The position numbers were made by a program, and so were the translations under genes. Positions 7,142 to 33,926 of a stretch of DNA of 34,525 nt are shown one piece after another. The stretch covers positions 4,730,215 to 4,764,739 of the forward strand of contig NC_068996.1 in NCBI RefSeq assembly GCF_001194135.2, in the 5' to 3' direction. The stretch's first letter is position 1. Each line of letters starts with the position of its first letter. The stretch is from Octopus bimaculoides (Eukaryota). The notes under the pieces were generated by a model that saw only the letters and a program-made list of their open reading frames with translations, did not search any database and was not told where the DNA came from.

Positions 7142-8721
7142 AGACACTAAAAACACACATCGTTAATATACAGGAAAGTTTGGCTTTGTTAAACTGATCT
7201 CCACATCACTGCAGTTTTTCTATTATCGATTATTTGCTAGTAATCTGTGTTTTTATCGATTTACATAGTCTACTGAATGTCTTTACTCAGTTCGTTTGTT
7301 TTAGCTTAGTTCTTATTCAAATATTTAGCAATAAATTTCACGATAAAATTGCAGTTTTCTAGGCCAGAGTGAAACAGCCAGAGTGTGTTTACCAAGCAAA
7401 AACAGAAACACAAAATATTTTATTCGAGTACATTGAAACTGTACAGAAGCTCACCACATGTTTGTATCAACTCTTGTATCTAAGCTTAATTCGCCTAGTT
7501 TAACACCACTACCTAGCCTTTGAGCCGTTAGTTGTCTGGTTTATTAAAAGCAATTATACCACAGTACTAGTTTCCGAAATCTTTGACATTAGATTTAATT
7601 TATTATACGAAAGCATATATAGAAATTGTAACCTAGCTCTTTCTAACATCGTAACAGAAAATAAGTTAAAAAAAAAGAACAGATAAATAATAAACCACAA
7701 GTTTAAATTAACTGTCAAGAAATAGGATGAATCAAAGAGAACAAAAGGATAGAAGAGACAAAATAATAAATGAATAAACACATAAATGATAAATAGAAGA
7801 TACGAGGTTTTTCTGTTTCCAGAGTCACAGATCTATAAATAGCCAAGTGTCTGCTCTGATGCAATTAATGAGGGTGGATATACAATTCAGTGTATGCTGT
7901 GTAATTTGATGTTGCTTTGTGTGTTATGTAGAGCTAATGGAGAAAATTTTTCTTGGCCAGTCAATTTTAACTTGTGATTTATTATATATCTATGGGGATT
8001 TTTTGTGTGATTTGTCCCTTTCTTTTTCTTCTTTTTTTGTTGCTTCGAATATGATATGCAAATGAAGTGATAAGACATCTTGGGCTAAGAGTACATATTC
8101 TTCAAATAAAAGTCCGACCAGCAAATGGATTTTACACGTAAATCTGATGAGTCGATATTTTTGCAAGATTAGTTCAATAATGTTAAAGCAATATATTGTT
8201 ACACATATATAGTAATAATATAGCAATATTCTTCTCATAAAATAGCATTCAAACCTTTATAAAGTTGTATAATAAAACGAATAGCTCACTCCATTCTCCC
8301 TGTTAATATCTATATAAACTCTACAGTAATTTATGGATTTTCAGATATATCATCACTAAAACTATCCATTTCCATTTCATATTTGTATCTGATAACCAGT
8401 ATTCATGGATGAGCTTAATAAGGCAAATTCCAAGGTTAAAACCCAAATAAATTCAATATATATATTTATATGTACACACACACACAAACACATTTTCTAT
8501 CATATAACTTCAAGAATGTTTAACTCATATAACATCTAATACATTTTAGATTCTTTTATTTTTTCTCTATAATCGTCATTCATTTATAATTTTTCAACAG
8601 TATATATTAACAGTATATAGAAATCATAGACAAATACACAAACACATACCCACCCACCTACATATGTACATATAGATAAATGCACAAAAACATTTGCAAG
8701 CATTATATATATATACACACA

Positions 8722-8801
<80 letters not shown>

Positions 8802-8894
8802 TACATACATACATACATACATACATGGACAGGCAGATAGATAGACAGATGTAGATGTAAGGATATGTAAGAATTATATGTTTATATATATGTA

Positions 8895-8936
<42 letters not shown>

Positions 8937-9328
8937 GAGAGAGAGAGAGTGAGAGAGAGAGAGAGAGATGATTGTTGTATGTATTTGAAACATGCATACA
9001 TTACAGAAATAGGACAAAGAGTCAATGCCCTTTCTAAAGTGAATCATAGATCCAACTCATACATACACAGTAATGTAATATACGTACATAAAGGTGATAA
9101 TAATTGAAGCATCCATTTAAAAAGATACGTTTGATAATTCTATGCTACGACAAAGCTTGTTCAGCAGAAAATATTAGAATACAGCAATAAGAAAATCATG
9201 AAATAACAAATGTATCAACAAAACACATAAGTATGTACAGAAATCTTTGATGATAATGATGACGATGACGACGACGAGGACAACGGCGATGATGATGATG
9301 ATGATGATGATATATGTATATGTGTGTA

Positions 9329-9400
<72 letters not shown>

Positions 9401-9536
9401 ATGTCATATATATGTCATCATATCTGTATTTATATGAATGCAAATATATACATACACATATATGTGTATGTGTGTGCGTGTGTGTTTGCATATATGTATA
9501 TGCATATACATATATTTCTATGCATATATGTATATA

Positions 9537-9745
9537 TCATCATCATCATCATCGTTTAATGTCCACTTTCCATGCTGGCATGGGTTGGACGTTGTGACTG
9601 AGGACTGGCAAGCCAGAAGGCTGCACCAGGCTCCAATTTGATCTGGCAGAGTTTCTACAGCTGGATGCCCTTCCTAACGCCAACCACTCCAAGAGTGTAG
9701 AGGGTGGTTTTACATGCCACCAGTACGAGGGCCAGTCAGGCAGTA
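9537..9745 (-). mobile_element. Short retroelement 3' module ending in (GAT)n, RTE-LINE-tail/SINE family
   Basis: Reverse complement of the recurrent unit ggcgttaggaagggcatccagctgtagaaac...gtccaacccatgc.agcatggaaa.cggacgttaaac(gat)n. Confidence 0.75.
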
Positions 9746-9796
9746 CAACACACACACACTCACTAACACACACACATACATATAGATAGATAGATC

Positions 9797-9883
<87 letters not shown>

Positions 9884-9968
9884 GGGTGGATAGATATGTA
9901 TGTGTGTGTATGTGCATACAGACATAAATATATATATACATGCACACAAACATACTTGTATACATACA

Positions 9969-10000
<32 letters not shown>

Positions 10001-10660
10001 GTCATATATACTCACAAACACACTCACCAAAGTATAATAGTAAAGGGGTTTACATATGCCACTGTGACGGTCACAGAGAGAAATATAAAATTCATTTACA
10101 TAATATTAAACACTAGCTGACCCTGTGCCATCAAAAATGATGGCTAATTGTAGTATTTTATATTTATATAACGTACAAAATAAGGTACATAATAATCCCA
10201 CATACAAACATTCACATACTGCCCCTGTACATGCACACACATACATACATATACTCACACAGAGTTGAAACGCTGTTTGATTTTTCTTTTCAGCGTTGAA
10301 TGTTCACCATCCAATTTCCATTGCATACACACACACAGACACACACAAACATTCACATACCTCCCTTTTCTTTTACATACACACACATATACTCACACAG
10401 TTGACAAGCTGATTTTTTTCACCCCTTCCTTCGTTATTCATCTATCACTCCTTCCTTTCTCATTCATATGTTGTGACGGAGAAAAATAGAAGATACACGA
10501 TGTGCTCTTTGCTACTTCCTTTCTCTCATTGCTATTACTTTCTCACACTCACTCTCTCTCTCTCAGTCAGGGCTATTTCTCCTTCACTGAATTGCTATTT
10601 TCTCTCCTCTCCCATCACTTGTACTACTCTTTCACCTACTTCCTCCTACTCCTACTATGT

Positions 10661-10998
10661 NNNNNNNNNNNNNNNNNNNNNNNNNNNNNNNNNNNNNNNN
10701 NNNNNNNNNNNNNNNNNNNNNNNNNNNNNNNNNNNNNNNNNNNNNNNNNNNNNNNNNNNNNNNNNNNNNNNNNNNNNNNNNNNNNNNNNNNNNNNNNNNN
10801 NNNNNNNNNNNNNNNNNNNNNNNNNNNNNNNNNNNNNNNNNNNNNNNNNNNNNNNNNNNNNNNNNNNNNNNNNNNNNNNNNNNNNNNNNNNNNNNNNNNN
10901 NNNNNNNNNNNNNNNNNNNNNNNNNNNNNNNNNNNNNNNNNNNNNNNNNNNNNNNNNNNNNNNNNNNNNNNNNNNNNNNNNNNNNNNNNNNNNNNNNN
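10661..10998. other. Assembly gap (N run); others at 12688-12697, 13317-13326, 13686-13774, 27927-27936, 32026-32119
   Basis: N characters in the sequence. Confidence 0.99.
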
Positions 10999-11272
10999 AA
11001 AATGATAGTAATTAAAAACCATGTTAAAATAAAAATTTCAAGTTTAAATGGAAAAAAAACTCAGTGTATGTTATCATTTTAAGGCTCCATTTTAGTGTGT
11101 TATAAAATTTAGGTTTGATAATAAAATCAAACAAAATAATTGTAAATATTTAATTTATTAAAATATTTGCCAGAGTAATTTTATTGCAGACATTGTAAAA
11201 TCAGAATATTTGAACAAACAAATTTAAACACAATGCGTGTGAATTTTTCAAAAGAGCATATATATATATGTA

Positions 11273-11307
<35 letters not shown>

Positions 11308-11445
11308 GTGTGTATGTATGTATGTAAATGCACATTATTATATCTGTGTAGCTGTATATGAAAATATATATGTATATAGGTGTGTGTATGTATGCATATA
11401 CATATATATATATAATATGCATTTGCTTGCACATGTACATACATT

Positions 11446-11486
<41 letters not shown>

Positions 11487-11679
11487 ATATATGTATGTAT
11501 GTATATGCACATATGTATGTATACTTATATACCTATGCATATAAACATAAACTATTAACATATCAGATTTACAAAGACCAGCCAAATGATTTACAGAACC
11601 TAGCATAGTTCTATAACTAAAGCATTGTTTTAAGGTAAATACCTGAGTTATAGTCTGTTATCATAATGTCCTTGTGTTT

Positions 11680-11737
<58 letters not shown>

Positions 11738-11895
11738 GAATGTGTGTATATGTGTGATATATATATATAAATGTATGTATATATATATTACAGCACTTTG
11801 TGCCAACACAGCATTACAATTTTAAAAAATCTAATTGGAAAATGTATGTGCTGACATCATATAAAGGTGCAACAGCTGTATGTACATATAGGTAT

Positions 11896-12105
11896 CAAAT
11901 TTTGGCACAAGGCCAGCAGTTTCGGAGAAGGGGCTAAGTCAATTACATCGACCTCAGTGTACAACTGGTACTTATTTTATCGAACCCAAAAGGATGAAAA
12001 GCAAATCAACCTCGGTGGAATTTGAACTCAGAATGTGATGACAGACGAAATGCCGCTATGCATTTTTTGCCCGTTGTGCTAACAATTCTGCCAGCTCACT
12101 GCCTT
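11896..12105 (-). mobile_element. tRNA-derived SINE, family B
   Basis: The minus strand begins aaggcagtgagctggcagaattgttagc...gagttcaaattcc (A/B-box-like). Related copies lie at ~13980-14160, 16590-16780, 17452-17642, 18100-18300, 18750-18950, 27480-27590 and 27937-28050. Confidence 0.75.
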
Positions 12106-12643
12106 GCTGAGTGTATATATTTTGATATATATTGCACAGATGTATTGTCTGTTATTGCCATACCAAACGTTTTACTGTGCAATACAGCAATGAAACAAAA
12201 CACTGTTAATACATCAGTAATTTAATGCTTAGTCATGCAATCACAAATGTATAAAATATGCTAATTATTCCATCCAGTTTATTTTAGTATCAGTAAATTT
12301 ATAAGCAATGTGTTATAGATCGTTAAAGGTAGTATGCAGCTGCTGGAGAAGACTAAAAAAAAAGCAAGGAATGTACATACAGTAGTCTCCCTTCCTTTTT
12401 ATGTCTACAGAATATTGTACAGATGAATTGTTTACAAAAGGTCCTCTGTTACACTACAGCAATGAAACTATTCCCTGTTAATAAATCTGTAGTAAAACTA
12501 GTAACAGGGTTGACATTCATGGTGCTATCAAATGAAAACTAACAAATCATACATGTCAAAAGGTGTTACAAAACTATCTTTAAAATATGCATAAAAGCAT
12601 TGTATTTTTTAGGCAATAAACCTTAGGAAATTCAGGCAAGCAC

Positions 12644-12687
<44 letters not shown>

Positions 12688-12831
12688 NNNNNNNNNNTTG
12701 ACATTCATGGTGCTATCAAATGAAAACTAACAAATCATACATGTCAAAAGGTGTTACAAAACTATCTTTAAAATATGCATAAAAGCATTGTATTTTTTAG
12801 GCAATAAACCTTAGGAAATTCAGGCAAGCAC

Positions 12832-12872
<41 letters not shown>

Positions 12873-13266
12873 ACATACTTCAAACTCAATACTATATACT
12901 CAACTACGAGTGCACTGCATGTTATAGCAAAAACACTTGTAAGCTAATGGAAGTTTATTATATAATTTCTTGTTCCATAGTCATTTATATAATCTCTCCT
13001 ATGCATGTATATTATATATTATGATTTTATATAAATATATAAACATACATCAAAATATATGTGACTATATATGTACATATGTAGAATACAGTAACATATA
13101 CATACACACATATATATTTGTACATATAAATGTATACTTATGCATACATGCATACATATAACATATAACATATATGCATACATATATACATATATATATA
13201 CATATATATATACATATACTAATATATATACACACACATACATATATATACATGCATATATATACA

Positions 13267-13316
<50 letters not shown>

Positions 13317-13486
13317 NNNNNNNNNNATATATATACACATACATATATATACATATATATATATATACATATATATACATACACACATATATACATATAC
13401 ACATATATATATATATGCATACATAAATACATATACATACATATATACATATATATACATATATGCATATATATATATATATATAT

Positions 13487-13525
<39 letters not shown>

Positions 13526-14283
13526 CATAAGTACATTAAATATAAAAGTCCTTTAGAAATCACATAATAATTATTTTTAAGCAGTTCTTTTTAAGAGTGA
13601 GATTTTTTTTTATAAATTTTTCTGAATTTTGTATTTAATCATTTTAAGGCATTCAGCAAGAAATTTAAAATAAAAATAAAAAGGANNNNNNNNNNNNNNN
13701 NNNNNNNNNNNNNNNNNNNNNNNNNNNNNNNNNNNNNNNNNNNNNNNNNNNNNNNNNNNNNNNNNNNNNNNNNNNCAATTACATCAACCCTGCCATATTT
13801 TACTGGTCTTCTCTGTTTTGTTAACACTGGAGAGCTAAATAGCAGAGTTGTTGTCCTTTCATGGTATTTGGATTCAGAAAATAAAGAAATAGGAAAAATA
13901 TAAAAATACACCACAAGTTATTTTATCTGATGCGCTAACAATTTGGCCAATTCACCATATAATAATAATAATAAGTGTTTCAACACAAGGCCAGTATTTT
14001 TGAGGGGAAGGGATTTATCAATTTCATCATTCCTACTTCTTGGCTGTTTTTTTTTTTTTTTTTCATTCCTTTGAAGCAATGAAAACAAAGTTGGTGTTGA
14101 CAGGATTTGAACTCAGAATATAAAGCACAAGAACAAGTTCTGCAATGATGCCCAAATGATTTCATAAATCCACTGTTCTATAATAATAATTAAGCAGAGG
14201 AAGCTAGTTGATTACATCAACCCCCTCCTCCACCCTCCACCCAACACCCCCAGTAGTTGACTGGATATTTTGTACAACTCTGT

Positions 14284-23335: not shown

Positions 23336-24038
23336 CATTTTATCTCACAACATTTCTGTTCTTTCTTGTGTTTTTCAACTAAAAACTATCAACAGTATCC
23401 TTGTTGATGCAATTATTCTTTTAGTAATCCCATCTTTAAATTCCTCTTGGAGGTTACAGTCAAAAGAGCCCAATGCAGAGTGATTTGTGGTCCTGAAGCA
23501 CCTTTATCATTCTCTGCAGGGGGTACTTCCTACTCATTTGTTGATATCTTATCTTTTATTTGTTGCAGTCATTAGACTGTGGCCATGAAGAAGTTTTAGT
23601 CAAATGAAATGACCCCAGAACTTATTTTTTCTTTAAGCCTGGTACTTATTCAATCGGACTTTTTTTGCTGAACCAGGAACATAAACACACCAACAATGGT
23701 CGTGAAGTGGTGGTGGGAACAAGCACAGACACAAAGACACACACACACACACATATATATATATACACACACACACACACGACAGGTTTTTTTTAGTTTC
23801 TGTCAACCAAATCCACTCACAAGGTGTTGGTCGGTACAAGGCTATTTTAGAAGACACTTGCCTAAGGTGCTCTGAAGTGGAATTGATCTCAGAACCATAT
23901 GGTTGGGAAGCAAGCTTCTTACCACACAGCCATACCTTCTTTGTATTGTATCAATTATTTCATGTTTTTTATGTTGCATTATTAATCTGTATTTTGTTTT
24001 TAACCATACCATTTACTGTATTGGTGTGTGTGCGTATG

Positions 24039-24093
<55 letters not shown>

Positions 24094-24464
24094 ATACATA
24101 CATATATATATATATACACATACACACACATATATATAGTCTTTTATTTGTTTCAGTCATTTGACTGCGGCCATGCTGAAAATCAAACTGTCTAAAGTAT
24201 TGAATTTTCCACACGCCAAACAAGTTCACTGTACTCTTTGTCATCCTCATCATCGATTTAATATCAACTTTACCATGCCTACATAGGTTGTATGGAGCTT
24301 ACTGAAGCAATTCTCTACAGATTGTAGCCTTTCCTGTTGCCAACTCTTAGCTGTTTCCAAGTAAGGCAATATTTTCCCCCATGGCCTCAATGTTTACACA
24401 GAATATTGGAAATGAATGACAATCATTTCCAACAATCAAATGATCAAGATTGGGACACACACAC

Positions 24465-28972: not shown

Positions 28973-29019
28973 AATGCTACATAAAGAAGCTTTTTTATGA
29001 GTACTACCGGATTATTTGA
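28973..29019 (+). CDS. Putative short terminal coding exon of an unidentified plus-strand gene, (x)CYIKKLFYEYYRII*
   Basis: A pyrimidine-rich tract and tctgtcttgtAG acceptor (28971-28972) precede a phase-1 frame open to TGA 29017-29019. Upstream exons were not identified. Confidence 0.3.
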
Positions 29020-29175
29020 ATCCATATGGTGTCACTTAAATTGATGTGTGTATATAGTTTATTGAAACTAAAATTTTATTTCACAACTTGAGTTTCATGC
29101 CTCTACAATTTTCAGGCAAAAACATGTATATACATACATACACACACACACACACATATATCTATATATACATAC

Positions 29176-29206
<31 letters not shown>

Positions 29207-29998
29207 CATACCCACATACATATTAATGCACACAAATATAATGTATTCTTATAAAAAATAATATATATACATACACATATATAAACATACACAACACATA
29301 TATATATCTAAATATATGCAAGTGTATATTACAAAAACACATTGAAGACAGACTGAAGTTTAGAGGCGCATTAAACCGGGGCTAAATGGGCTGATAGTAT
29401 AAGTCTTCCTTCTAGATGGGACATCATTTTGCTGCATGGTTTACTCTCAGCTGCTGGTGATCAAGTCAGCTGAGAAAACTGCAGCAATGCATATATCTAA
29501 AAAAATGCATATACACACACACACACATATATATATATATAATTGTGTGTATAGTATGTATGATGTATATGTATGTGTATATAAATTTGTGTGTGTTGTG
29601 TGTGTACTTATACACAGATATATGGGTATATATGAAAATACATGCACGCAAACATCTGCATATAAAATCAAATAACTATCTATATATATTTAATATCCTT
29701 ATCTATGCATTTACTTGTGGTATTAGAATCGTGACACTGCTTGTGTTCATGTATAGAATGTACTGCAATTTTATTATGGCTGTGATGACAGGCATACATG
29801 AGTGTATGTAAATGTGTGCAAGTGTGTTAGCATCTGTGTTTTATGTATATAGAAAGCAAGTAAGAATTATATAGATAAAACATCTATATAATTTAATATT
29901 TTTTTATTCATTTTTTTTGTTTATTATTTATATTATTTTTTTTATTTCATTTTTTACATATCCACACCAGCAGGTTATGTAAATTACTTCAATTGTAA

Positions 29999-30012
29999 TT
30001 TTATTAATAAAA
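29999..30012. promoter_or_regulatory. Candidate polyadenylation signal(s): TTTTATTAATAAAA gives AATAAA on both strands
   Basis: The minus-strand AATAAA (30000-30005) lies ~80 nt downstream of the PNP-domain stop. The plus-strand AATAAA is at 30006-30011. Confidence 0.35.
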
Positions 30013-30083: not shown

Positions 30084-30814
30084 TCATTCGAGTACATGTA
30101 GCAAAGACTTCATGTATGCTGCAGCAACAAGCGCTGCATATGGTTGCCAGCCTTTCTTCCCAGTTCCATCAGTGTAATCTGCCATTCCTCGAATTACTAG
30201 GAAACTGCAGTTTCTACTTCCTTCCAGCGAGTCAAGAACAGCGTCAAATTCTGAATCGAAAGCCTTGATGCCATTCAGCTGGGCAAAATCCTTGCGCATC
30301 TTATCATTTTGGGTTACCATTTTGCCAGAGCCAATAACTCCATATCTAATGGTCACCTGTCCCTCTGTGTAGGACTGAAAATGAGAACCAGATGGTTTTG
30401 GATGCTCGTATTGAACAACAGTACCATTAGGTTGGGTTGCAAATAGCTTATCTCGCATAATAGATGGACGGTTAAAATCTGATTCTTCACTTTCAAGGAG
30501 ATCTCTCCCTTCTTCAATGTAGGGATCCCATGGTTTTGCAATGGTGGGATTCCGTTCAACAGTGCACTTGAGGTTCTCAACAGCTTTTTGAAAGTTCTGA
30601 TTGGTTGACGACCACGACTGTGTCACATAACTGTAGCCAATAGAATTAGGAATTTTCTCAGCTCGTTGGCAATGAACATAGAGTGAACCACTTCTGTCAA
30701 CAGGCGTAGATACTACCACATCTCCGAGTCGAACATGTTTGTTGAAGTCTGAGAAGTGAGGAACGGCACCGCCAACGCCAACAAGAATAACATGTTCAAC
30801 ATAACTAAAAACGC
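30084..30814 (-). CDS. Terminal coding exon of a nucleoside phosphorylase/MTAN-superfamily (PNP_UDP_1, Pfs-like) domain protein; 5' exons outside window
   Basis: An uninterrupted ~242-codon frame follows a ttttctttatttttttcAG acceptor (30816-30815, phase 1). Motifs: VILVGVGGAVP, HVRLGDVVVS, YGVIGSG, AFDSEFDAV, FLVIRGMADYTDG...WQPYAALVAAAYMKSLL. Stop TGA at 30086-30084. Confidence 0.9.
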
Positions 30815-30989
30815 CTGAAAAAAATAAAGAAAAATAAAAGGAAAAAATTATTAGTATTCTTTCCACACGGAAGAAAAATTAATAGTTTAACAAAACATAA
30901 ATATTTTTTTAAAAGAAAACTATTGAAAGAACAACGTTTTCAGATGGTTGATTTAAGAGAGTATAAGAAAATTTAAGAACTTCTGAAAT

Positions 30990-31760
30990 TATTGGCTCAT
31001 CCATAAATAATTGAAAAATTGTATGAACTAAAAGTCGGAGAGGGATGGGATAAACTACCTGCATCAACTTGCTATAAAAGCAGGTAGTAATTTTACCTTA
31101 TGCTTATTCTTAGTGCACGTTTTGAAGAGTGCAGTTCGATTTTAACAGTTATTTTTTCAAACCTATAATGGAAGTGACAAAGGAGCATTTTCAGCATATT
31201 TTGCTTTATGAGATCAATAAAGGCAACAACGCAAAGGAAAGTGCAAGGAATATTAACGCAGTATATGCTGAGAGCCTTTTCGGTCATGACTGACCATGGG
31301 ATTGCACCTAGAATGTTTCTTTCCAAGGCACAAGTCCGGGCAAGGTCGTTTATGGAAGACCAGCAGTAGCCCATACATACCAGCCTCCCCTTTCCATGCC
31401 ACCTATGTTATTCAATGGAAAGGCAAAGGCTGATACAGCTTGGTACCTGTGACGTTGAAACTCATTTCTACAGCTGAGTGAACTGGAGCAACGTGAAATA
31501 AAGTGTCTTGCTCAAGCACACAACACACAGCCCGGTCCGGGATTCGAACTCACAACCTCACGATCATAAGCTCGACACTCTAACCACTGAGCCATGCACC
31601 TTCACATGCAGTAAATACGGATCACGCAGTATATAGGGAGTCATGTGCCTTCACATGCAGTATATAGGGATCAGACAATAAGCATAAGCCAGTGTCAACG
31701 GTGGTTCCAGAAATTCCAAGGAAGACAGAGGGAAAAAATACCAATGATTTACATGTGGCT
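30990..31760 (+). mobile_element. Mariner (Mos1-like) 5' remnant with N-terminal HTH, split by a SINE
   Basis: TIR-like tattggctcatccataaataa at ~30990. ATG 31168 gives MEVTKEHFQHILLYEINKGNNAKESARNINAVY, which resumes at 31657 as AVYRDQTISISQCQRWFQKF. Confidence 0.85.
31267..31602 (-). mobile_element. tRNA-derived SINE, family E, inserted in mariner
   Basis: The minus-strand head aaggtgcatggctcagtggttagagtgtcg...gagttcgaatcccgg has a clear A box (TGGCTCAGTGG) and B box (GTTCGAATCC). It is flanked by GCAGTATAT-like duplications. Confidence 0.85.
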
Positions 31761-31814
31761 ACATTTGGGAAAAAAACAGCACACACACACACATATATAC
31801 ATATACATACACAC

Positions 31815-31846: not shown

Positions 31847-33238
31847 ATGCTATAATTAATAGAGCAAATAGTAAACAGTTGTCATTATTAGTACTCAGAA
31901 GTTTGAATGTCAGAGCAATGAACTACTGTATATTCTTGTTCGCTATTAATGGCAACAGATGCTACAAAAAAAAAACCTTTAAATATAAGGGAAGTAACTC
32001 AAATGGAAAAAGAGAAAAAGAAAAANNNNNNNNNNNNNNNNNNNNNNNNNNNNNNNNNNNNNNNNNNNNNNNNNNNNNNNNNNNNNNNNNNNNNNNNNNN
32101 NNNNNNNNNNNNNNNNNNNATACGCACACACGTGTATGTATATATATATATGTATATGTACGCAAGTACATCCTCATATACACATAGGTGCCTATATGCA
32201 TATGCGTAACATAACACATTTACACATATAAATATATGCGTATATATATATGTATGTATGTATGTATGTATATATGTATATAAATATATATACAGACATA
32301 TATTCACACCCCTGTATACACACACACAAACATATATATATATACCCTCCCATCACACACATACACCTGCACATATACAAATACATGCATATTGATATAA
32401 GTGAAGGGGGTATGTGCACATGAAAAATCACACATATACACCAGACACAGTCTTACACTCATATGCATACATACACACACACACACACACACTTACATAT
32501 TATATACATACACACACATATAAAAAAGAAAAAATATATAAAAAAAGAACAAATATAAAAATGGAAATTAAAAATTTAAAATTAATGGGAATTAAAATGT
32601 ATGGGAAAGCTTGTGCAGGAACATAGTAGAGATGCAGACACTAACTGTGGTCTTGGGGGGCCCCAAAACAATAACAGGTATTTTGTGACATGTGGACGTG
32701 ATCCAAAGAGTTCAGTTCTCGAATTTAAACATGTGGTGGGGTGTAAGGAACTTTTCCAGATGAGCCATCATTCCATGTTACAAAGACTGCACTTGCCACT
32801 ACCATTGATATAAGGGTTACACTTGGCTAAGATCTTCCAGTAAATACTGTAGTTGACATCTTGTTCTGTTAAGAAACATACATAACTGGATAATTTAGGA
32901 GTCTTTCATTTATTCCAGTCTGTGTAGCTTAAGGTGTGATTGTTGAATCTTGCTTTAAAATTTCCCTTTAATTTCCCTCTATATATCTCTTGGATAAAAC
33001 TGTATTATTAGCATTGGTGGAACTTACAGTAGCTTCATAAATAATGGCCTCAGTCATGCAGGCTCCATTTAGTGGGTACAGTTCTTTATTCCTGCAGAAA
33101 CAGATAGCTTTGTGGTGTTGTGTTGTATTGTATTTCTACTATGTTCCTTCACAAACTTTCCCATATATTTTAACTCCCATTCATTTTTAATTTTAATTGT
33201 TTTTCATATGTATTTTTATATATTTTTCCTTTTTATAC

Positions 33239-33277
<39 letters not shown>

Positions 33278-33547
33278 TGCATGTAAGTGTGTGTATATGT
33301 GTATGTATGCATATGAGTGTAAGACTGTCCAGTGCATATAGGTAATTTTCATGTGCACATGCCCCCTTCACTTATATGGATATGCATATGTTTGTATATG
33401 TGTGGATGTATGTGATGGGAGGGTGTATATGTGTGTGTGTGTGTGCGTGGGATTGTGAATGTATGTCTATATCTATAAATATATGTCTATATATGTATTA
33501 TGTTACATGCATGCATGTAAGTACCTATGTGTATATGAGGATGAAGT

Positions 33548-33592
<45 letters not shown>

Positions 33593-33926
33593 CGGTGGGT
33601 ATGTATGTATGCATGAGTACGTACATGCATATATGTTTGTGTGTGTGTATACATGTTTAGTGTGTGTGGAGGCTGAGTATGTACATGCATATATGCTTAT
33701 ATATATACATATTTGTTTGTGCGTGTGCGTATACCTGTTGTGTGTGTACATATGTTTTATGTTTCTATAACTTCTTTATATATTTTTTTTTCCTTTTTCT
33801 CTTTTTCCATCTATTAGAGTTACTTCCCTGATATTTAACAGTTTTTTGGGGGGGTTTTTTTGTAGCATCCATTGCCATTAATAGCTGATGACAACCGTTT
33901 ACTGTTTGCTCTATTAATTATAGCAT
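31847..33926 (-). mobile_element. Penelope-like element remnant: GIY-YIG endonuclease fragment (33102-32582) between ~790-bp inverted arms (31847-32636; 33129-33926)
   Basis: Minus-strand translation with stops and a frameshift: CFCRNKELYPLNGACMTEAIIYEATV...RYIEG/FKARFNNHTLS...KLSSYV...YSIYWKILAKCNPY...KCSLCNME*...LNSRTELFGSRPHVTKYLL. The flanking arms align in reverse complement. Confidence 0.85.

Follow-up and report, generated by a model that had tools for sequence, protein, structure and literature searches.

An octopus exon from a protostome family of winged-helix proteins with an NLRN-type, Cap17-like nucleosidase domain

We analyzed a stretch of 34,525 nucleotides from the genome of Octopus bimaculoides (contig NC_068996.1, positions 4,730,215 to 4,764,739; this whole stretch is hereafter the window), which contains the terminal coding exon of LOC106873116. 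The exon lies at positions 30084-30814 on the minus strand and, with its stop codon, encodes the C-terminal two thirds of an N-glycosidase domain with the fold of 5'-methylthioadenosine/S-adenosylhomocysteine nucleosidase (MTAN; PF01048 superfamily, Pfam PNP_UDP_1). Sequence comparison places the domain in the NLRN, or 'Pfs', branch of the Cap17-like PNP_UDP_1 clade and not with the housekeeping MTANs, purine nucleoside phosphorylases (PNP), uridine phosphorylases (UP) or methylthioadenosine phosphorylases (MTAP). The gene is real and under purifying selection; it has been inherited vertically within a protostome family that is monophyletic. Our preferred reading, to which we assign a probability of about 0.55, is that the complete protein would be an N-glycosidase of the NLRN/Cap17 type whose activity on adenine nucleotides is gated by an N-terminal winged helix.

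The terminal exon of LOC106873116

The translation of the exon corresponds to residues 13-255 of XP_014775831.1, the RefSeq model named 'uncharacterized protein LOC106873116' (100% identity, E 5e-162). On the minus strand the exon is preceded by a 3' splice site made of a polypyrimidine tract and an AG acceptor (30815-30845, with the AG at 30816-30815), which reads TTTTCCTTTTATTTTTCTTTATTTTTTTCAG immediately before GCGTT; the acceptor itself reads ...TTTATTTTTTTCAG before the same GCGTT, and the first exon base is 30814. The intron that ends here is in phase 1 and interrupts a Gly codon. The reading frame remains open up to a TGA at 30086-30084, and an AATAAA polyadenylation signal is found on the same strand about 80 nt past the stop codon (30000-30005). 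An open frame of 243 codons is expected about 7e-4 times per whole window at its base composition. The limits proposed by the first-pass annotation, which was made by reading the sequence, are the exact limits of the exon as given by the acceptor and the stop codon. Its description of an intact exon holds for the terminal exon; the strand was missing from that description, and only about two thirds of the domain is encoded.

A contig from the genomic reads of a second octopod (Logan SRR11869385) carries the same exon intact, with 93.7% nucleotide and 92% amino-acid identity. The ratio of nonsynonymous to synonymous substitution rates (dN/dS) for the exon between O. bimaculoides and this octopod is 0.19, and the flanks of the exon are 78-90% identical, with indels. 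In Octopus, Elysia, Mytilus and Limulus alike, the phase-1 intron interrupts one and the same Gly codon. Mytilus and Limulus retain the terminal exon as one large piece, which in Elysia is split into five exons. Because the exon is intact with a low dN/dS in a second octopod, and because the intron/exon structure is conserved, chance, contamination and an unconstrained relic are excluded. More specifically, the intact exon in the second octopod and the shared intron position and phase rule out a chance open reading frame (ORF). Contamination or a recent horizontal transfer is ruled out by the octopus-type repeats that flank the exon, the conserved intron and the recurrence of the sequence in the genomic reads of the second octopod.

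The exon is only part of a longer coding sequence. In full-length relatives the enzyme domain extends roughly 75-90 residues further towards the N-terminus than the exon boundary, starting QPTIAIITAQYCEKLAVDAM...NTTTRLLG, and in many of them it is preceded by the winged helix of Pfam HTH_69 and by a short DYVGF helix that is conserved. The corresponding octopus exons were not found in the window using tblastn (word size 2), regular expressions for the motifs, or hidden Markov models (HMMs) of the N-terminal region run on six-frame translations. Since these searches came back empty, either the preceding intron is longer than 3.7 kb or the exon sits in an assembly gap of 94 N at 32026-32119. The first third of the domain, which comprises beta1-alpha1 and should carry one catalytic Glu, lies outside the window, and we infer that the complete octopus protein would need upstream exons located beyond it. 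The start of the RefSeq model XP_014775831.1 is an internal Met located 12 residues upstream of the exon, and the model is truncated at its N-terminus. Its first residues, ISAENTITRLL, correspond to AAENTVTRLL at the end of the preceding Elysia exon, so at least one upstream octopus exon exists.

Several public gene models, those of the octopus, Limulus and Elysia, are N-terminally truncated. For instance, the model of the Limulus ortholog, LOC106476818 (327 aa), begins with MVHQMP and lacks its N-terminal part. Two unannotated upstream exons on the Limulus scaffold KI905796.1 (2787-3041 and 5313-5447) code for the conserved helix, PDYVGFIKKIMKLMQ, and for one half of the winged helix (HMM E 1e-7). 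In Elysia marginata, BMAT01002957.1 shows collinear, weaker matches at 2222-2284 (EYVGFVKRALVLLQ) and 7675-7845 (MLQVLEDAYPISITTDTL). These are probably the N-helix and winged-helix exons, located inside a neighbouring gene model that carries a Methyltransf_FA match. The Elysia ortholog is itself named 'C3 and PZP-like alpha-2-macroglobulin domain-containing protein 8', and PNP_UDP_1 is the only domain that Pfam finds in it.

Fold and branch of the superfamily

The octopus exon alone is hardly recognizable to general domain libraries. It has no Pfam match at E<=1 and no PDB match by phmmer, and its matches in NCBIfam and PADLOC are marginal only (0.003 for the NCBIfam MTAN model). Orthologs do exceed the PF01048 gathering score of 25.1, with 33.6 bits for Folsomia and 27.0 bits for Dendroctonus. 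The fold was assessed on predicted structures. An AlphaFold2 model of the exon product, built from an alignment of 107 sequences, reached a predicted local distance difference test score (pLDDT) of 94.3. Its closest solved structures in Foldseek are 5'-methylthioadenosine/S-adenosylhomocysteine nucleosidases and uridine phosphorylase (E ~1e-5, probability 1.0), with template modelling (TM) scores of 0.44-0.50, as expected because the product is a partial domain (two thirds) with an insert. The model of the full domain of the Limulus ortholog (pLDDT 91.1) matches only MTANs or futalosine hydrolases among its top 50 Foldseek hits (E 1e-13, target-normalised TM 0.67-0.76). The profile of the family against PDB sequences likewise retrieves MTANs at 1e-13 and DeoD at 0.07. 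The exon thus encodes the C-terminal two thirds of an MTAN-fold domain, and the nucleoside-phosphorylase/MTAN fold named in the first-pass annotation is borne out by the HMM, the predicted structures and the family profile. Neither Cap17 nor NLRN has a solved structure in the PDB copy searched. The closest solved structures, those of MtnN (also called Pfs) and futalosine hydrolase, share the catalytic positions of the domain (N-terminal Glu, Glu, Arg and Asp). These enzymes are stand-alone housekeeping proteins of about 230 aa that lack the region of about 120 residues, RLGDVVVS and WQPYAA.

In order to place the domain within the superfamily, we scored known enzymes and relatives with an animal-only HMM built from the octopus exon and 52 other animal sequences. 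The RLGDVVVS pattern recovered 196 bacterial and archaeal relatives; because such relatives were collected by the motif patterns of the clade, they are close relatives by construction, and it is their context that adds information. The scores are 92-157 bits for 80 bacterial and archaeal relatives taken from genomes and 108-186 bits for fungal-type relatives. The housekeeping enzymes of E. coli score far lower, with 10.3 bits for MtnN, 3.7 for DeoD, 1.7 for Udp and -1.8 for XapA, and Amn gave no match. Four validated ATP nucleosidases were scored in the same way, with the sequences of NLRN, DDAN and DtcC taken from Table S8 of Rousset et al. 2023 and that of Cap17 from an E. coli CBASS (cyclic oligonucleotide-based antiphage signalling system) locus, where D472 was confirmed within VRGISDF. 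NLRN, a domain of a fungal NOD-like receptor (NLR), scores 108 bits and DDAN, a sponge Death-domain protein, 37 bits. The match is weak for Cap17 (22 bits) and, for DtcC (10.9 bits), close to the level of MtnN.

The first-pass annotation was right to set the exon apart from the housekeeping enzymes, and neither the HMM nor the trees described below group it with MTAP, PNP or uridine phosphorylase, an outcome which would have spoken against that placement. Its suggested kinship to fungal NLR-like proteins, Cap17 and Detocs stands for the fungal NLRN, to which the octopus exon is 27% identical over 243 residues; Cap17 and DtcC are distant. An accurate wording, as far as sequence can tell, is that the domain belongs to the NLRN-type branch of the Cap17-like clade and is not close to Cap17 or Detocs.

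NLRN, the 'Pfs' domain of an NLR of the fungus Hyaloscypha variabilis, is the best-scoring validated enzyme. Common to it and the octopus domain are the motifs RLGD..VS, GSG, IRGxxDYxD and WQ.YAA, as well as the long insert, in which an RP...D.LF element lies. The two differ at E-M-E and GGVIQHD, which read D-S-E and SLYVHC in the octopus. They also differ in context: NLRN serves as the effector at the N-terminus of an NLR (NB-ARC/TPR) protein, and in the animal family the N-terminus carries a small winged helix. Cap17 of the E. coli type III CBASS and DtcC of Detocs have the same fold and catalytic Asp (VRGISDF in Cap17, IRGMADY in the octopus), but they have a shorter insert and other regulatory domains, TPALS/SLOG in Cap17 and a receiver domain in DtcC. 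The Cap17 gene that we recovered is that of E. coli EcPF14 (NZ_CP054230.1, 2998-4515), in a type III CBASS operon where it adjoins the CBASS oligonucleotide cyclase and a WYL regulator. Its RefSeq name is '5'-methylthioadenosine/S-adenosylhomocysteine nucleosidase', a housekeeping label that hides an immune effector.

Among the closest prokaryotic relatives are several multi-domain proteins of conflict systems: a fusion of the DRT8 reverse transcriptase with the PNP domain, EAD2-PNP, PNP-NACHT-FGE and HEAT/LmuA-like-PNP. The PNP-NACHT-FGE-sulfatase relative is NLR-like, and the HEAT/LmuA-like-PNP relative comes from a Methanosarcina metagenome-assembled genome (these four architectures were seen at loci L027, L012, L009 and L030). 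All 10 of the 10 bacterial relatives scanned match the PADLOC model of the CBASS 'PN-superfamily' (Cap17-type) effector, at 1e-15 to 1e-23. Animal orthologs match the same model weakly (about 4e-5), and the octopus exon has no match to it.

We also computed neighbour-joining trees (about 200 sequences, 209 columns, 100 replicates). The animal sequences are monophyletic in 95-97 of the 100 replicates, with the octopus grouped with Elysia and Mytilus at weak internal support. A group composed of the animals, the fungal-type relatives, the bacterial multi-domain relatives and NLRN was recovered in 65 of the 100 replicates, and the trees do not settle how Cap17, DDAN, DtcC and MtnN branch relative to it.

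The protostome family and its active site

Over its whole length the exon is 36-59% identical to proteins of molluscs, chelicerates, collembolans, beetles and lepidopterans (E 1e-37 to 1e-87). Every named member that our searches retrieved comes from a protostome, the list being made up of insects, Collembola, a spider, Limulus, nematodes, a cestode, a gastropod, bivalves and the octopus. The combination of HTH_69 and PNP_UDP_1 is found in Timema, Folsomia, Dendroctonus, Trichinella and Ostertagia, and the DYVGF helix and the HTH_69 winged helix occur in the same protein in Timema, Trichinella, Ostertagia and one further sequence (P0045). Although the winged helix of such proteins is called 'Zalpha-like' in the literature, in the orthologs it matches Pfam HTH_69, down to 5e-29 (P0121, P0133, P0146 and P0045). 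No Death, TIR, CARD or NACHT partner was seen in any animal ortholog. The first-pass annotation had listed such domains, and a winged helix, as ones to look for at the N-terminus; the orthologs carry the winged helix.

It had also described the family as poorly studied. The members are indeed uncharacterised, but the architecture was not unknown: Rousset et al. 2023 (bioRxiv 10.1101/2023.01.24.525353) point to uncharacterised arthropod and nematode proteins with a 'Zalpha-like' domain and a Cap17-like PNP domain, namely CG12065 of D. melanogaster (Q8MRM6), A0A7M7MVF0 of A. mellifera and H14E04.2 of C. elegans (H2L0A5). Their text names arthropods and nematodes and no molluscs. A survey seeded with Pfam would probably have missed the octopus protein because it has no PF01048 match on its own. 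We note that the octopus protein is linked to the CG12065/H14E04.2-type proteins by architecture and taxa and not by direct alignment, and a homolog search seeded with a dipteran member returned no match labelled Drosophila. The motifs of that family, D-x-E, Y-x-x-C, H-P and RG.xDY.DG, are the same in the octopus, and the intron position and phase are shared among Octopus, Elysia, Mytilus and Limulus.

We examined the active site by alignment. Conservation was counted over 53 animal sequences, residues are numbered as in XP_014775831.1, and all the coordinates that follow are on the minus strand. The first element, VGVGG (30768-30782), is a glycine-rich strand and loop equivalent to TGSAGG of E. 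coli MtnN; G25 is present in 47 of the 47 ungapped animal sequences and G28 in 48 of 49. The RLGDVVVS strand (30708-30731) is the strongest signature of the clade. It is followed by an expanded region of 121 residues, TPVDRSG...GQVTIR (30345-30707), which separates it from the GxIGSG strand. In the AlphaFold2 model (secondary structure by DSSP) this region forms a beta-hairpin, two helices and a small hairpin, and it holds the conserved Y58, C61, F..RP...D.L and H150-P151. Relatives of the fungal NLRN type and the multi-domain bacterial relatives possess the expanded region too, and in MtnN it is much shorter. The GVIGSG strand (30324-30341) corresponds to LIVSGD of MtnN, and WQPYAAL (30129-30149), another signature of the clade, starts the C-terminal helix. 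All the motifs listed in the first-pass annotation are therefore present at verified coordinates, and the long insert that it saw between the LGDVVV and SG motifs is the 121-residue region typical of the clade.

The predicted catalytic residues lie in two of the motifs. D199-S200-E201 (30249-30257) takes the place of E172-M173-E174 of MtnN, as the first-pass annotation had read from DSEFDA, and E201 is the equivalent of the ribose-binding Glu. IRGMADYTDG (30165-30194) contains R221 (30189-30191), equivalent to R193 of MtnN, and D225 (30177-30179), the predicted catalytic Asp, equivalent to D197 of MtnN, D472 of Cap17 and D353 of DtcC. The roles of MtnN E174 and R193 we take to be those described for MTANs in general. 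D225 is kept in 49 of 50 animal sequences and R221 in 48 of 51; at the position of E201 the animals have E in 32 cases, D in 10 and G in 7. The equivalent of the N-terminal Glu (E12 in MtnN) is conserved in full-length animal sequences, within ...YCEKLAV..., and its codon in the octopus lies outside the window. The PDB titles of the Glu12Gln and Asp197Asn mutants of MtnN back the catalytic assignment of those two residues. Departures were seen in individual orthologs: Elysia has L at R221 and Q at the D199 position, and another ortholog (P0019) has G at the E201 position. The octopus protein agrees with the family consensus at every near-invariant position, and because of this it looks like a working member of the family.

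Possible function

Under our preferred reading, that of a winged-helix-gated adenine-nucleotide N-glycosidase, the upstream exons would supply, judging from the orthologs, the short N-terminal helix (DYVGF...), the winged helix and the opening 75-90 residues of the enzyme domain, among them the Glu that activates the water. Once assembled, the enzyme would cleave an adenine nucleotide by hydrolysis at its N-glycosidic bond. By analogy to the fungal NLRN, with its 27% identity, the most likely substrate would be ATP or dATP, yielding adenine and ribose-5'-triphosphate. D225 would protonate the adenine and E201 would hold the ribose hydroxyls, while R221 and the N-terminal Glu would position the water. 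The winged helix would gate the activity, possibly via binding of nucleic acid, and the enzyme may act as a cell-autonomous effector of nucleotide depletion. The analogy is to experiments on the relatives: Rousset et al. 2023 report biochemistry and mutants for Cap17, DtcC, NLRN and DDAN, and the mutations D472A in Cap17 and D353A in DtcC abolish function. We infer from this likeness that the octopus protein may possess ATP nucleosidase activity and may have a role in immunity or cell death.

Several observations weigh against this reading. The first position of the E-M-E motif is D in 50 of the 53 animal sequences and the second is variable, giving D-x-E. E-M-E is present in NLRN, DDAN, Cap17, DtcC and MtnN, and the octopus has D-S-E. 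Furthermore, where fungal and bacterial relatives have GVVQYD after RLGDVVVS, animals have xxY[VIL][HY]C (Y58...C61). Because of these changes at E-M-E and at the QYD motif, the substrate cannot simply be taken as ATP. Over the N-terminal 75 residues the mollusc shares 60% identity with arthropods, and Limulus shares 77-79% with hexapods; the protostome winged-helix/PNP family also appears to be low-copy. Such high conservation and low copy number are atypical of fast-evolving immune effectors engaged in arms races. The profile of the winged helix against the PDB gave weak matches of MarR/ArsR type and no ADAR1 or ZBP1 Zalpha domain. We found no paper characterising CG12065 or H14E04.2, and no assay of any animal winged-helix/PNP member. 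To these can be added the weak scores of Cap17 and DtcC, the branching order that the trees do not settle, and, for the octopus gene itself, the truncated model and the upstream exons that the window did not yield.

The same observations feed an alternative in which fold and family are unchanged and the protein is a conserved, constitutively needed nucleosidase with another substrate, such as a modified nucleoside or nucleotide or a signalling nucleotide, and a non-immune metabolic or regulatory role; the winged helix would then serve localisation or regulation and not the sensing of pathogens. This is our main alternative, and we consider it less likely than the preferred reading. It would account for the family-wide changes at the substrate-contacting motifs (E-M-E to D-x-E and QYD to Y-x-C), for the very high conservation over more than 500 million years, and for single- or low-copy vertical inheritance with conserved introns and a dN/dS of 0.19. 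It would also fit the lack of any Death, TIR, CARD or NACHT partner in the animal orthologs seen, a winged helix without detectable likeness to Zalpha by sequence, and the fact that the nearest solved structures are metabolic MTANs and futalosine hydrolases. However, the sequence is far closer to the PNP domains of conflict systems and to the validated NLRN than to the housekeeping enzymes. Circumstantial data on CG12065 also stand on the other side: this protein is listed in the SUMO-enriched proteome of Drosophila after immune challenge (PMC4592996), and it is a marker of the ovarian stretch cells, which share a hemocyte-like signature (PMC7205450). A related and somewhat more doubtful proposal, prompted by D-x-E and Y-x-x-C in place of E-M-E and QYD, is that the protostome family as a whole may have changed its substrate and be a conserved nucleosidase, still gated by the winged helix, that acts on another nucleotide or a signalling molecule.

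It is improbable that the domain is a pseudoenzyme without catalysis, one that would serve as a sensor or scaffold by binding a nucleotide. The altered E-M-E motif and the further losses in some orthologs (R221L and Q at the first position in Elysia, G at E201 in P0019) would agree with it, but the octopus retains D225, R221 and E201, matching the mutationally validated D197 of MtnN and D472 of Cap17, and D225 and R221 are 94-98% conserved across the 53 animal sequences. Least credible of all is a relic, a gene that lost its 5' exons and encodes a truncated, non-functional fragment, to which the lack of an upstream exon in the 3.7 kb of window before the exon, the 255-aa RefSeq model with its internal Met 12 residues upstream and the transposon relics in the adjacent intron might point, because the exon is intact at a dN/dS of 0.19 in two octopods while its flanks diverge faster, the splice acceptor and the poly(A) signal are conserved, ISAENTITRLL matches the end of the preceding Elysia exon, the 94-N gap and the long introns of cephalopods explain the unseen exons, and the Limulus and Elysia models are truncated in the same way.

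The statement of the first-pass annotation that this is the only clean coding exon in 34 kb is true for host genes, as the other ORFs of at least 90 aa are artefacts of microsatellites and N runs or pieces of transposons. One of the latter, a 109-aa ORF on the plus strand at 1064-1393, matches reverse transcriptase (RVT_1, E 5.5e-8 in Pfam) and looks like a retrotransposon fragment rather than a host exon. Within the intron just upstream of the exon, two plus-strand fragments at 31129-31293 and 31645-31800 (together spanning 31129-31800) match the HTH_48 domain of Mos1/mariner transposases (Pfam, E 2e-10 and 2e-5). Being interrupted and out of frame with each other, they represent a decayed mariner element. 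The same intron contains the 94-N gap, which could hide the penultimate exon. Other assembly gaps are located at 10661-10998 and 13686-13775, together with three runs of 10 N. One of these short runs (12688-12697) lies near the junction of two tandem copies of a 188-bp unit (12510-12873) that are 99% identical and could be a recent duplication or an assembly artefact. Dense TA, CA and ATAG microsatellites occupy 8500-13600, 23900-24250, 29000-29700 and 33300-33800, including (ATAG)n at 9782-9896 and AT-rich arrays at 13094-13529, and they give rise to numerous spurious ORFs of the 'YIYIYI/CVCVCV' kind, 90-170 aa long. Scanning the window for Rfam families and tRNAs returned no hit.

The broader question is whether animals use nucleosidases that destroy ATP or other nucleotides and that were inherited from prokaryotic conflict systems; so far, assays exist only for a sponge Death-domain protein and a fungal NLR domain. 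On its own the octopus copy contributes little more than one further, cephalopod, member to a family that was already flagged in 2023. What the comparison adds is the extension of the winged-helix/PNP family to cephalopods, gastropods, bivalves, chelicerates and flatworms, and the demonstration that the family is monophyletic, keeps its introns and evolves under strong purifying selection. At the E-M-E motif it departs systematically from every validated enzyme through a family-wide D-x-E signature. This signature, the exon structure and the recognition of truncated gene models should help in the choice of constructs and in the reading of assays. If the substrate has indeed shifted, the family would represent an animal enzyme activity without a described counterpart, and not a mere copy of bacterial ATP depletion.

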